Virus record (IMG/VR): IMGVR_UViG_3300040801_004532
Span: 1-64,000 of that record
Length of the DNA stretch: 64,000 nucleotides
Direction: 5' to 3' (one strand)
This document shows positions 54,502 through 61,168 of this stretch, piece by piece; within the stretch, counting starts at the first letter, position 1; each line of letters starts with the position of its first letter. A model generated the notes under the pieces. That model was not told the DNA's origin. It worked only from the letters and a program-made list of their open reading frames with translations, and searched no databases. The translations under genes were made by a program, and so were the position numbers.

Positions 54502-54558
54502 TTATATTCGAACCCTAAATTATTTTAGAACAAAAAAATAAAAGGGGTTCGACTATAA
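54502..54558 (+). promoter_or_regulatory. RBS-sequestering hairpin with late promoter motif in its loop
   Basis: TTATA-T-TCGAACCCT pairs with GGGGTTCGA-C-TATAA; loop contains TTTAGAACAAAA. Confidence 0.65.
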
Positions 54559-55328
54559 TGATTTGTGAATATTGTAAAAATAAACACGATGGATCATATG
54601 GATCGGGGAGATTTTGTTCTTCAAAATGTGCCAGGGGGTTTTCTACATCAAAGAAAAGAAAAGACATTAACAAAAAAGTGTCGGAAACTCTTAAAGGATA
54701 TAAAACAATTCCTGGCGGAAAAGTTAAATTATGCGATTATGGTTGTTGTAAAGAAGCAAAATTTCAATTGAAAAACAAAAAATGGTGTTGCTCAGAAAGC
54801 CATAATAAATGCTCAGCTGTTAGAAAGAAAAATTCTAAAGGTTTGACAAAATCGCATAAAAATGGGCGTCCTGCTTTTCCAGAAGGAGCTTATTTAAAGG
54901 GGCATGAGTCATTCAAAAAAAATCTTAAAGAAAAATATAAAAAGTTAAATTTTATTGATAAACCTATAGCAGAAAAACGAAAAATTATATTAAAGGATCA
55001 AAACAATAAATGTGCCATTTGTAATATTGAACAAGAATGGAATGATAAACCTTTAATTTTCCATCTTGATCATATAGATGGCAACAGAAAAAATTGGAGT
55101 AGAGATAATCTAAGATTTATCTGTCCCAACTGTCATAGCCAAACAGAAACATATTGTAGGGGAGGTAATAAGAACATATCAAATAAGCAGCTTAAAAAAT
55201 TACTAATAGAAACAAACTTTAATTTTACAAAAACTTTAGAATTAGCAAACTTATTTCCTGGTGGTTATAACTGGAACCGTGTTAAAAAAATAGCAAGTAA
55301 AATGTGCCAGGGTGATGGAATTTGGTAG
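54558..55328 (+). CDS. HNH homing endonuclease
   Basis: MICEYC...GSGRFCS..CA N-terminus; CAIC...HLDHIDG...N...NLRFICPNCHSQT. Confidence 0.9.
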   Translation: MICEYCKNKHDGSYGSGRFCSSKCARGFSTSKKRKDINKKVSETLKGYKTIPGGKVKLCDYGCCKEAKFQLKNKKWCCSESHNKCSAVRKKNSKGLTKSHKNGRPAFPEGAYLKGHESFKKNLKEKYKKLNFIDKPIAEKRKIILKDQNNKCAICNIEQEWNDKPLIFHLDHIDGNRKNWSRDNLRFICPNCHSQTETYCRGGNKNISNKQLKKLLIETNFNFTKTLELANLFPGGYNWNRVKKIASKMCQGDGIW

Positions 55329-58353: not shown

Positions 58354-58431
58354 GGACCCATAGCTCAGTTGGCTTAGAGCCGCCGGCTCATAACCGGAAG
58401 GTCGAAGGTTCGAATCCTTCTGGGTCCACCA
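58354..58431 (+). tRNA. tRNA with CAU anticodon (Ile2-like, or elongator Met)
   Basis: CCGG-CTCATAA-CCGG; G1-C72 paired; body resembles Ile2; CCA. Confidence 0.9.
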
Positions 58432-58454: not shown

Positions 58455-59093
58455 GTGATACCAAGTGTCTTTTTCAAAGATTTCGAACAAGCTATAGATT
58501 CAATTATCAAAAAGAAAAACCAACGAAAAGTTACAGAAGAAATTATTGAAAAATTAAAAAGCCACGGATTCCCCCCATCATTGAATAAGGGAATTATAGT
58601 TGATGGACTTTCAAAAATTATTAATGAAGAACTTCCTTTCGATTCTTCTCGAGTTTTAACAGAAATGATTACATTTTCAAAAGCTGTACCCATTAAATTG
58701 ACAAACCATCAGAGATCAAATTTAAAAAAGATTATGGAGTGTATTCTTGAAACTCCAACAGACACAAGTTGCAACCATGACTCATTGGTAATTTCAATAT
58801 CAATTCATGGAGGCGGCTTTACACCAGTAATTAGATTGCCCGAAGTGATCTGTTTATATTGTGGTTTAAATGTCACTCTTTATTCAAAAGAAACAGAAAA
58901 ATATGGTATTGAAATCTCCGATAAAAAAATGAAAGAATTATTCAAATGGGCTATGGAAAACAGAGGTAAATTTGCAGAAGATTTTGTAAAAGATCCGATT
59001 GGATCATATAATAGCTGTGAATCAAAATGGGAGGGAGATATTCCTTTTAGAATAACAAATATGAAAGCATTCGAATCGCGTAGTGGTCAATAA
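58455..59093 (+). CDS. Hypothetical protein
   Basis: 212 aa with CxH...CLYC. Confidence 0.6.
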   Translation: MIPSVFFKDFEQAIDSIIKKKNQRKVTEEIIEKLKSHGFPPSLNKGIIVDGLSKIINEELPFDSSRVLTEMITFSKAVPIKLTNHQRSNLKKIMECILETPTDTSCNHDSLVISISIHGGGFTPVIRLPEVICLYCGLNVTLYSKETEKYGIEISDKKMKELFKWAMENRGKFAEDFVKDPIGSYNSCESKWEGDIPFRITNMKAFESRSGQ

Positions 59094-59134: not shown

Positions 59135-59680
59135 ATGGAAATGACAATAACGGAAGGTTTGAAAAGACTGAAACTCCTTGAAAAAAGGATGGCCAGAAAC
59201 TGTGGGGAAATCGAAAGATATTCCTCAATTCTATCAAATGAAAAACCTGCTTTCGATACAGAAGAAAAGCAGAAGCAAGAAGTGAAAAGTCTTATCCAGG
59301 CAAATATGGACCTGGTACAAGAATATGAAAAACTCAAAGCATCAATCGACTATACCAATCTTGTTATCAAGGTTAAGATTGGTGATCAAACCAGGACAAT
59401 CCATGGGTGGTTGACCATTCTGAGAAAGACTGGTCAGTTGCTCATTCAAACCTACAATTCCTTGAGCACGAGGGATGCAACATCAAGACAGCCCCGTTAT
59501 CGGGACCAGAACACAGGACAAAGCCCAACAGTTGTTCGTCTCTATGATGAAAATCAAAAACGGGATGGCCAAAGACTTTGGGAAGACCTTACCAAAGGAA
59601 AAGAGGTTGAAGGTCGTCTTGAAGTTATCAACGCAACAACCCAACTGCTGGATCCGCCCGAACCAGTTGAAAGGAGTTAA
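59135..59680 (+). CDS. DIP1984/DUF6847-like helical protein
   Basis: MTITEGL..LK.L.KR N-terminus, L...I..TN....V centre and L...NA.T.L C-terminus fit the family pattern as recalled; TAAGGAG SD. Confidence 0.55.
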   Translation: MEMTITEGLKRLKLLEKRMARNCGEIERYSSILSNEKPAFDTEEKQKQEVKSLIQANMDLVQEYEKLKASIDYTNLVIKVKIGDQTRTIHGWLTILRKTGQLLIQTYNSLSTRDATSRQPRYRDQNTGQSPTVVRLYDENQKRDGQRLWEDLTKGKEVEGRLEVINATTQLLDPPEPVERS

Positions 59681-59684
59681 CTCT

Positions 59685-60017
59685 ATGAAGAAGTTTGGAG
59701 CATTCCTATTAGTAATTGGTTTCGTTCTGCTCCTTTGTGCTTCTGCAAGTGCTGATGGATTCTATAGGTGTGGCGGATATATGGTCAAGATTGGAGATCT
59801 GAAGTTTCAGGTCCTTCAAAAATGTGGACCGCCAGAAATGAGAGAGTTTGTCGGAAACTCGGCAGAAAGACAAACATATAGAAGGGGCAGAACAAGAAGT
59901 TATAATTACGACATGCCGGTCGAACAATGGATATATGGACCTGACCGTGATCTATGGCATGTTATCACCTTTAAAGGTGGTAAAGTATATAATATCGAAA
60001 GTATCATTCAACGATAA
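59685..60017 (+). CDS. DUF2845-like exported protein
   Basis: Signal peptide, RCG...V.IGD....V..KCG.P...E.W.Y......F.GG.V..I. Confidence 0.75.
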   Translation: MKKFGAFLLVIGFVLLLCASASADGFYRCGGYMVKIGDLKFQVLQKCGPPEMREFVGNSAERQTYRRGRTRSYNYDMPVEQWIYGPDRDLWHVITFKGGKVYNIESIIQR

Positions 60018-60104
60018 AGTTTGGGTTCGCTGGTCCTCACTGCTGCTTTTGTGCGGTGGGTTGGTATTAAGACCAGAGGGCTACGAGAAGCGGACCCAAT
60101 ACTT
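60017..60104 (+). ncRNA. Small structured RNA element
   Basis: TTGGGTTCGC/GCGGACCCAA, TGGTC/GACCA and CTCACTGC/GCGGTGGG nested stems. Confidence 0.55.
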
Positions 60105-60107
60105 CTT

Positions 60108-60399
60108 TTGGATTCTGTAGTGTAAACAAGTGAAACCGGGGAGCCCTTTCATATTGGGATAAATATGAGACTACAATGGATATAGGTTGATTACCTATAA
60201 AACTATTTCAAGTTTCAAGTATAAATTCTCAAGTCTCACTCGTGACCGCGGCGAGGGTAAATAACCATTTGCGGGTTTCAAGTTTAAAGGGGTAAAGAAT
60301 CAAGTTTAGGGCTTGGAATGATTCCATGCGAGAAAAACCCAGGTTTGGTGGTGCATCTCTCCAGCAACATTGCCACTACTGGCTGCTACACGGATCCAA
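60108..60399 (+). ncRNA. ~290-nt structured RNA with five TCAAGT repeats
   Basis: Closing stem TTGGATTC-TGTAGT / GCTACA-C-GGATCCAA; internal hairpins; no credible ORF. Confidence 0.65.
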
Positions 60400-60408
60400 T
60401 CAATTTAA

Positions 60409-60493
60409 TGCGGCGTAGAGAAGCGGTCAATCTCAGAGGGCTCATATCCCTCCGGCGTAAGCCTCACGGGTTCGAATCCCGTCGCCGCTACCA
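60409..60493 (+). tRNA. Initiator-type tRNA-Met(CAU) with a long variable arm
   Basis: U1xU72 mismatch, A11-U24, GGG/CCC anticodon stem, 13-nt variable region, CCA. Confidence 0.85.
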
Positions 60494-60497
60494 AAAT

Positions 60498-60575
60498 GGG
60501 GGCTTGGATTAATGCTTGATCGCCCTGACTCAAGAAGCAGGGAGGAGTAGAGTAGCGACCTACTAGCCCCCACCA
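60498..60575 (+). ncRNA. Aberrant tRNA-like RNA
   Basis: GGGGGCT/AGCCCCC-A-CCA acceptor, D-like stem, CCCTG/CAGGG with 10-nt loop, AGTAG/CTACT with 9-nt loop lacking TTC. Confidence 0.7.
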
Positions 60576-60592: not shown

Positions 60593-61168
60593 ATGATAAA
60601 AGAAGATACAACGAATGAAGAACTAGAGAAGGAAAAACAAAAATTAGAAAAAGACCTTGAGTCTTTAAGAAAAAATTATAAAACATTAATGACCAAATTG
60701 ACAAAAACAACTAATCGAATAAGTGAAATCGACAGCGAATTGGATAAAAGAAATTTAAAAGGAAATGATATTGAAAAATTATTAGAAACATTTCCTGAAA
60801 CCGAGACAAAAGAAAAATTGCTGCGCGATCTATTGAGCAAGTTTGATCTTTCAGCAGAAGGATATTTTCCCGATACTGGTCAAAGATGTATCCAAATTTC
60901 CTTGGAAAAGGACAGTAAAGAATCTCTCCAAAAAACATATTATGGTCTTAAATTACTTTTACCATATCTCAAACCAGTAAAAGATGGTAATATCTATGTA
61001 GATATTTTTGAAAGCACTTTATCAAGATTTGGAATCTATACTCTTATTATCAAAAAAGAGAAATTTGAAGTTGAGAAAACAACATGTGGACATCCCGAAA
61101 CAATCTACTCAAATAAAGATTTGAAAAAAGTTTTAGAATATATTCAAAAACATCATTATTACGAATAA
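60593..61168 (+). CDS. Hypothetical protein with N-terminal coiled coil
   Basis: 191 aa with SD. Confidence 0.65.
   Translation: MIKEDTTNEELEKEKQKLEKDLESLRKNYKTLMTKLTKTTNRISEIDSELDKRNLKGNDIEKLLETFPETETKEKLLRDLLSKFDLSAEGYFPDTGQRCIQISLEKDSKESLQKTYYGLKLLLPYLKPVKDGNIYVDIFESTLSRFGIYTLIIKKEKFEVEKTTCGHPETIYSNKDLKKVLEYIQKHHYYE

Follow-up and report, generated by a model that had tools for sequence, protein, structure and literature searches.

Bacterial initiator tRNA (tRNA-fMet, as encoded by metZWV/metY of E. coli) is the most conserved tRNA in bacteria, and it is recognized by a CAU anticodon, an unpaired position 1x72 (C1xA72 in E. coli), G2:C71 and C3:G70, A11:U24 in the D stem, three G:C pairs closing the anticodon stem (29:41, 30:40 and 31:39), A73-CCA and a short variable loop of 5 nt that is taken as a given. 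Class II tRNAs, in contrast, have a variable region longer than 10 nt with a helical stem of 3-7 bp (PMC11245113), and their core has a 3-bp D stem with 13:22 unpaired and Leu, Ser, Tyr or Sec identity. Class I anticodons combined with a long variable arm occur in nematode V-arm tRNAs (nev-tRNAs) and other non-canonical V-arm tRNAs of eukaryotes (Hamashima et al.; the 2016 MBE paper is listed as reference 8 of PMC5389517). The nematode molecules, which have Gly or Ile anticodons, are reportedly tRNA-Leu-derived bodies charged with leucine. Non-canonical tRNAs with long variable arms have also been found in bacteria and phages by metagenome mining, as the allo-tRNAs (Mukai et al. 2017, PMC5389517). 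Here we describe an initiator-type tRNA of a giant phage that has an extra hairpin arm which cellular initiator tRNAs essentially never have, and which recurs in more than one hundred other phage contigs, including cultured phages. In full-text literature searches, with limited coverage of subscription journals, we found no description of long-arm initiator tRNAs.

The initiator-type tRNA and its genomic setting

The window, that is the whole stretch of DNA analyzed, is the first 64,000 nucleotides of the 248,136-bp IMG/VR virus record IMGVR_UViG_3300040801_004532 (about 35% G+C, CheckV completeness 79%). It carries tail-fiber, portal, DnaB-helicase and DNA-polymerase genes. A 29-kb array holds 28 of its 29 tRNA genes and a tmRNA, interleaved with small ORFs on the + strand. 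No near-identical phage was found in INPHARED, and a blastn search of E. coli genomes gave no match. The positions of the features are listed in Table 1.

Table 1. Positions of the tRNA, its parts, its neighbors and related genes (window or record numbering unless an accession is given)
Feature	Position	Strand	Description
tRNA-Met(CAU), initiator type	60409-60493	+	85 nt; discriminator A73 at 60490; encoded CCA at 60491-60493
Acceptor stem, 5' strand	60409-60415	+	UGCGGCG, pairs with 60483-60489 (CGCCGCU); U1 (60409) x U72 (60489) mismatched; G2:C71, C3:G70, G4:C69, G5:C68, C6:G67, G7:C66 paired
D arm	60418-60434	+	4-bp stem GAGA/UCUC: G10:C25, A11:U24 (60419/60433), G12:C23, A13:U22; 9-nt loop AGCGGUCAA with G18G19
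Anticodon arm	60436-60452	+	GAGGG-CUCAUAU-CCCUC; G29-31:C39-41; anticodon CAU at 60443-60445; U38 at 60447
Variable region	60453-60465	+	13 nt: C44, stem GGC (60454-60456)/GCC (60461-60463), GNRA tetraloop GUAA (60457-60460), then UC
T arm	60466-60482	+	ACGGG-UUCGAAU-CCCGU
Elongator-type tRNA-Met(CAU)	58354-58431		G1:C72 pair, 5-nt variable loop, no GGG/CCC
ORF-free stretch upstream of the tRNA	60124-60392		five UCAAGUNU repeats at 60208-60307
Hairpin 3' of the tRNA	60499-60573	+	long, imperfect, GGGGGCU...AGCCCCC; before the RBS/ATG of ORF 60593-61168
Block kept in a related sediment strain	60197-60575		upstream region, tRNA, 3' hairpin
ORFs absent from that strain	58455-59093; 59135-60120; 60593-61168		small ORFs between tRNA genes
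ORF with HNH endonuclease domain	54558-55328		in the tRNA array
tRNA(CUA)	66784-66860 (beyond the window)		suppressor type
tmRNA	68211-68561 (beyond the window)		tag ADDYYTEVALAA
tRNA-Ile(UAU)	72988-73084 (beyond the window)		97 nt; 25-nt variable region, 6-bp stem
tRNA-Gly(UCC)	75335-75418 (beyond the window)		84 nt; 12-nt arm GC-GCAA-GC
Salmonella phage Arash	OQ632216.1 52364-52447		long-arm initiator-type tRNA, 84 nt; C1xU72; arm GGC-GAAA-GCC-UAG
Pectobacterium phage DU_PP_V	NC_047887.1 27960-28045		long-arm initiator-type tRNA, 86 nt
Providencia phage vB_PreS_PR1	NC_041913.1 28670-28751		long-arm initiator-type tRNA, 83 nt
Providencia phage PSTCR5	NC_055910.1 78568-78649		long-arm initiator-type tRNA, matching stretch found by BLAST
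Caulobacter phage phiCbK	NC_019405.1 50139-50323		tRNA-Lys(CUU), 87 nt, and tRNA-Lys(UUU), 91 nt

The tRNA was called by ARAGORN as tRNA-Met(CAU), and the Rfam tRNA model (RF00005, gathering threshold 29 bits) matched it over model positions 1-71 at 49.1 bits (E 3e-8), with 11 extra bases of the variable region treated as an insertion. The minimum-free-energy fold is exactly the five-arm cloverleaf (55% of the ensemble, z = -2.46 against shuffles). The earlier note had listed the 1x72 mismatch, A11-U24, the three G-C pairs, the CAU anticodon, U38 and a 13-nt variable region with a stem-loop, and its observation was confirmed in every detail. All initiator determinants known from E. coli are present, although U1xU72 is not the E. 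coli C1xA72 mismatch and its acceptance by formyltransferase is an inference by analogy.

The genome has only one other CAU tRNA, an ordinary elongator type located 2 kb upstream, and it also encodes tRNA-Ile with GAU, UAU and AAU anticodons. The long-arm tRNA is therefore the only initiator-type tRNA in the 248-kb record, and AUA decoding does not need a lysidine tRNA. Searches of the whole record returned no MetRS, formyltransferase or deformylase, so the tRNA would have to fit host enzymes, which agrees with its E. coli-like acceptor determinants; however, as the record is only 79% complete, the missing enzymes could lie in the unsequenced part.

The ORFs flanking the tRNA are uncharacterized (DUF2845, phrog_7208 and a pyrophosphohydrolase-like ORF), and no Rfam family was found for the flanks. 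Two microbial-mat metatranscriptome runs of one sample each hold a single contig of 263-265 nt that is 100% identical to the ORF-free stretch just upstream of the tRNA, and nothing else of this phage within the 4 kb compared. These two RNA runs cover only the region upstream of the tRNA. This stretch is a candidate abundant stable RNA or a long tRNA leader. Its repeats are found nowhere else in the genome, and it has no Rfam match, no significant fold z-score (-0.3 on the + strand, -1.9 on the - strand) and no counterpart upstream of the orthologous tRNAs in two relatives (G005 and G009, see below). The hairpin directly 3' of the tRNA has no T tail, so it is not a classic terminator, and it may be a processing or stability element.

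A freshwater-sediment run holds a 1,051-nt contig of a related strain in which the tRNA-bearing block is kept but the three neighboring ORFs are absent. The small ORFs between tRNA genes behave as variable cassettes, which this strain lacks while keeping the tRNAs. The block has 6 substitutions and 2 gaps in that strain; the 5 substitutions and 1 gap that were listed all lie outside the tRNA, which leaves one change of each kind unplaced. Despite the presence of a tRNA(CUA), which both relatives also have, genome-wide TAG recoding was not supported: TAG is the rarest stop of long ORFs (26 of 221), but reading TAG through lengthened ORFs less than reading TGA or TAA through, and no alternative code was used for any translation.

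Distribution and conservation of the extra arm

To determine whether the tRNA was a one-off, or an assembly error as the earlier note had allowed, IMG/VR was scanned for an initiator anticodon arm (GGGCUCAUANCCC) followed by 15-30 nt before the T arm, where a normal initiator has 10 nt. At least 119 contigs were identified, among which ARAGORN confirmed 111 tRNA(CAU) genes of 80-94 nt, 85 of them unique, with variable regions of 11-22 nt. An unbiased scan allowing 8-30 nt returned 9 long against 108 normal (9 of 117, 7.7%). The normal ones are mostly lone tRNAs (median 1 tRNA per locus, probably host genes at prophage edges), whereas the long ones sit in arrays (median 9), and among array-borne initiators the share is therefore roughly 20% (about 8 long against 31 normal in loci with at least 5 tRNAs). 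In contrast, the same pattern in one genome each of 185,579 prokaryotic species gave only 60 stretches, and these are mostly duplicated-loop artefacts, archaeal genes with inserts, and contigs with 7-18 tRNAs in 8 kb that look like phage DNA binned into MAGs or prophages. One of these, a 13-kb contig of a Saccharofermentanales MAG (JBBAEW010000057.1) with 10 tRNAs in the 8 kb examined, has the closest relative of the window's tRNA (U1xU72, U38, arm C-GC-GUAA-GC-CUC), while the MAG's own normal initiator lies on another contig with an identical T arm. The contig is probably phage DNA binned with its host, or a prophage, and is only a weak hint of a Clostridia-type host. Given that more than 100 independent contigs, three related phage records, four cultured phage genomes and the independent sediment run all have the same architecture, an assembly error was rejected.

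The 85 unique long-arm tRNAs look like initiators. Pair 1:72 is weak or mismatched in most of them (U:A 22, U:U 21, C:U 10, A:A 8, A:U 7; G:C only 5), G2C3/G70C71 occurs in 65 of 85 and A73 in 65 of 85. A:U at 11:24 is present in only 32 of 85, although some ARAGORN D-stem parses may be shifted, and the Levitt pair 15:48 is compatible in only 40 of 85. The GGG/CCC motif was required by the search, so that its conservation in this set is by construction; orthologues found independently relax it to two G:C pairs (U31.G39 in G005 and A29:U41 in Providencia phage PR1). The cloverleaf has compensatory changes in 15 of 20 pairs.

The extra arm is a selected structure. Per-sequence shuffling of the 11-22-nt arms had little power. 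As MAFFT alignment of whole tRNAs misaligned the variable arm, a gap-free alignment was made of all 18 unique tRNAs with a 14-nt variable region, which were not chosen for pairing. In this alignment the three stem pairs are 90.7% paired against 59.7% in shuffles (0/500), the covariation score is 0.902 against 0.243 (0/500), slid registers give 22-52% paired, and all three pairs have double changes. GNRA tetraloops cap 26 of 76 unique arms, and are equally common in ordinary phage tRNA-Ser/Leu arms. The geometry, a 3-4 bp stem with 0-1 unpaired base 5' and 2-3 unpaired bases 3', matches that of the tRNA-Tyr genes of the same loci and not that of tRNA-Ser or tRNA-Leu, consistent with a hairpin inserted into a class I core.

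The clearest evidence came from orthologues in relatives found through the DNA polymerase, G005 (64% amino-acid identity) and G009 (54% identity, 244.5 kb). Both keep an initiator-type tRNA with a long arm, UCUC-GAAA-GAGA in G005 and GUUCU-UUAACG-AGAGC in G009, and in G005 it sits at the same position in a matching tRNA gene order; U1xU72 also occurs in G005. A third contig (G010) has the window's exact acceptor stem with CCC-GAAA-GGG and a homologous downstream ORF. The hairpin is kept while its sequence turns over completely.

The arm is not specific to initiators. Within this clade, the initiator and tRNA-Gly(UCC) have long arms in all three genomes, with the Gly loop switching from GCAA to UUCG, whereas Ile(UAU) has a long arm only in the window's phage (its orthologues in G005 and G009 have 5 nt), Thr(UGU) only in G005, and Lys(UUU) and Cys(GCA) only in G009. 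The Gly(UCC) and Ile(UAU) anticodons are of the same families as those of the nematode V-arm tRNAs. Across phage arrays, 8.3% (72 of 867) of class I non-Met tRNAs beside long-arm initiators have long arms, as do 4.7% (17 of 361) beside normal ones, with Asn, Ile, Trp, Cys and Thr leading.

Four cultured phages were found to have the long-arm initiator-type tRNA. Pectobacterium phage DU_PP_V was itself one of the IMG/VR hits; its tRNA and those of Arash and vB_PreS_PR1 were all found by ARAGORN. None of the four has a tRNA feature in its GenBank record, in two records a hypothetical protein is annotated at the match, and in Arash a neighboring tRNA-His is also unannotated. Related phages (Pectobacterium My1, several Proteus phages and E. 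coli Av-05) have a 75-76-nt orthologue without the arm, mostly annotated as tRNA-Met, and the alignment has a clean 8-10-nt indel exactly in the variable region. BLAST searches of cultured phages with two other long-arm tRNAs gave no hit for one and only non-initiator hits for the other. Because of these annotation gaps, surveys of which tRNAs phages encode or avoid may undercount initiator tRNA, and the statement that phages generally avoid encoding tRNA-fMet where VapC targets it (PMC10264068) may be affected.

Interpretation of the tRNA and of its arm

We consider it fairly likely that this is a working, phage-encoded initiator tRNA whose 5-nt variable loop has been replaced by a short, stable hairpin. 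In this view it would be transcribed with the + strand tRNA/ORF array and matured with its encoded CCA, charged with methionine by host MetRS through the CAU anticodon and A73, formylated by host formyltransferase because position 1x72 is unpaired and G2:C71/C3:G70 are present, and excluded from elongation and placed directly in the ribosomal P site through the three G:C pairs. MetRS, formyltransferase and IF2 recognize the anticodon and the acceptor end, not the variable region. Long variable arms interact with the A-site finger during A-to-P translocation (PMC9561287), a step that an initiator skips, which may explain why it tolerates and keeps the arm so readily. Our analyses establish the sequence determinants, the conserved and covarying hairpin, the phage specificity, the orthology and turnover of the arm, and the absence of MetRS, formyltransferase and deformylase genes from the record; expression, charging, formylation, P-site use and any protective role of the arm are inferred only.

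The interpretation in the earlier note, a nuclease-resistant or specialized initiator with a class II arm, was partly supported. The initiator type is supported as far as sequence can show, but class II applies to the arm only, nuclease resistance or specialization remains an inference, and U38 is a minority trait (14 of 85 long-arm initiators) that is not linked to the arm. The note also missed the main point, that this is a widespread phage-specific tRNA class and that long variable arms also occur on other class I tRNAs of this and other phages.

In our view the most likely role of the arm, an insertion that phages have gained repeatedly in class I tRNAs and that selection keeps as a compact hairpin, would be to make the phage tRNA a poorer substrate for host factors that attack or process canonical tRNAs, such as tRNA-targeting defense or toxin nucleases, while leaving translation functions intact. 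This reading, which is inferred only, fits the phage-only distribution and the spread across isotypes, but it is important to note that related cultured phages do well without the arm, and that its presence on many other isotypes means no initiator-specific role is needed. A more far-reaching possibility, which we regard as improbable on present evidence, is that long-arm initiators mark a phage-private initiation channel in which the arm is a self tag, letting the phage keep starting translation while host initiator tRNA is destroyed or blocked by abortive-infection toxins such as VapC-type nucleases or by the phage's own host shut-off; alternatively, the arm could contact the A-site finger/bridge B1a region from the P site and change subunit joining on phage mRNAs. 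Variable-arm insertion across many phage tRNA isotypes would then be a general, previously unrecognized counter-defense strategy that standard annotation may miss.

It remains possible that the arm is a tolerated insertion with no function of its own, picked up by fast-evolving phage tRNA genes at the one site where the translation machinery already accepts extra RNA, with selection only keeping the extra bases folded into a harmless hairpin on what is still an initiator. Consistent with this, arms come and go among orthologous tRNAs within one clade, arm-bearing and arm-less initiator orthologues exist in closely related cultured T5-like phages, and stem and loop sequences are unconstrained apart from pairing. 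However, a neutral insert would be expected to be lost, whereas the initiator and Gly(UCC) arms persist across relatives down to 54% polymerase identity, and the trait reaches about 8% of phage initiators, and roughly 20% of those in tRNA arrays, but almost none of the cellular ones.

A less likely explanation is protection at the DNA level, in which the insertion splits the target site of homing endonucleases that cut conserved tRNA genes in competing phages, as an intron-less way of making the gene immune, and the hairpin is merely the form that keeps the tRNA working. This would also explain why many isotypes are affected and why only phages have it. Clustering of 6,460 ORFs from 227 loci gave only endonuclease-like ORFs and a DNA methylase as recurrent neighbors; of the commonest families, two have Pfam HNH or restriction-endonuclease domains, and the largest has no Pfam match and only a GIY-YIG-like motif seen by eye. 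Long-arm class I tRNAs lie within 300 bp of such ORFs more often than short-arm ones (16.7% vs 9.9%, odds ratio 1.8, p = 0.008), but this association is weak and computed on related, non-independent loci. An HNH ORF lies in this array, but the ORFs flanking this tRNA are not endonuclease-like, and no cleavage site is known.

An identity switch, in which the arm recruits a class II synthetase (Tyr, Leu or Ser) so that AUG starts or internal AUG codons receive a different amino acid, is very unlikely. The tRNA-Tyr-like size and linker lengths of the arm, and the V-arm tRNA-Ile(UAU) and tRNA-Gly(UCC) in the same genome, would be in keeping with it, but by established identity rules bacterial TyrRS needs the GUA anticodon, SerRS needs G73 and a longer arm, and LeuRS relies on A73 plus a class II core (A15:U48 and D-loop architecture), whereas this tRNA has G15:C48 and a class I D stem. 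Moreover, the initiator determinants are conserved along with the arm, which makes sense only if initiator function is kept. Equally improbable is that this is an elongator tRNA-Met, a lysidine-type tRNA-Ile2 or a decaying pseudogene, since, although all three share the CAU anticodon and the Rfam score is the second lowest of the window's 11 tRNAs, that score is due to the insertion alone, there is no Watson-Crick 1:72 pair as an elongator-type acceptor would have, A11:U24 and GGG/CCC are present, separate elongator Met and Ile(UAU) tRNAs exist, and compensatory changes in all stems across relatives exclude decay.

Comparison with described tRNAs

A phage-specific class of initiator-type tRNAs with a selected extra arm shows, if the molecules are used as we infer, that the initiation machinery tolerates, and phages exploit, a structural variant that is almost absent from cellular genomes. 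The natural pairs with and without the arm in cultured T5-like phages make the question directly testable, and the variant is also a ready-made scaffold for orthogonal or tagged initiator tRNAs.

Relative to bacterial tRNA-fMet, the window's tRNA shares the CAU anticodon, an unpaired 1x72, G2:C71 and C3:G70, A11:U24, the three G:C pairs, A73-CCA and the T loop UUCGAAU, and it therefore probably uses the same enzymes and the same P-site route. It differs in its 13-nt variable hairpin, in U1xU72 instead of C1xA72, in U instead of A at position 38, and in being encoded by a phage. With class II tRNAs, especially tRNA-Tyr, it shares a variable arm of more than 10 nt with a 3-bp stem, a tetraloop, 1 unpaired base 5' and 2-3 unpaired bases 3', but its D arm is of the class I type, its anticodon and acceptor identity are those of an initiator, and it is not Leu, Ser, Tyr or Sec.

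The closest described phage molecules are tRNA-Lys(CUU) of 87 nt in Caulobacter phage phiCbK and Brevundimonas phage Kikimora, and tRNA-Lys(UUU) of 91 nt in phiCbK. These also combine a class I anticodon with a short, often GNRA-capped, variable hairpin (for example GC-GAAA-GC) in a phage tRNA array, and we found no comment on them, but they are elongators, are annotated in GenBank and have no initiator determinants. Variable-arm class I tRNAs therefore exist in well-studied, cultured phages. The nematode V-arm tRNAs likewise pair class I anticodons with a long arm, but in the window's tRNA the body is an initiator and methionine charging is expected. Lastly, the allo-tRNAs have 8/4 or 9/3 acceptor/T-stem geometry and serine identity (G73/U73), whereas this tRNA is a regular 7/5 with A73.
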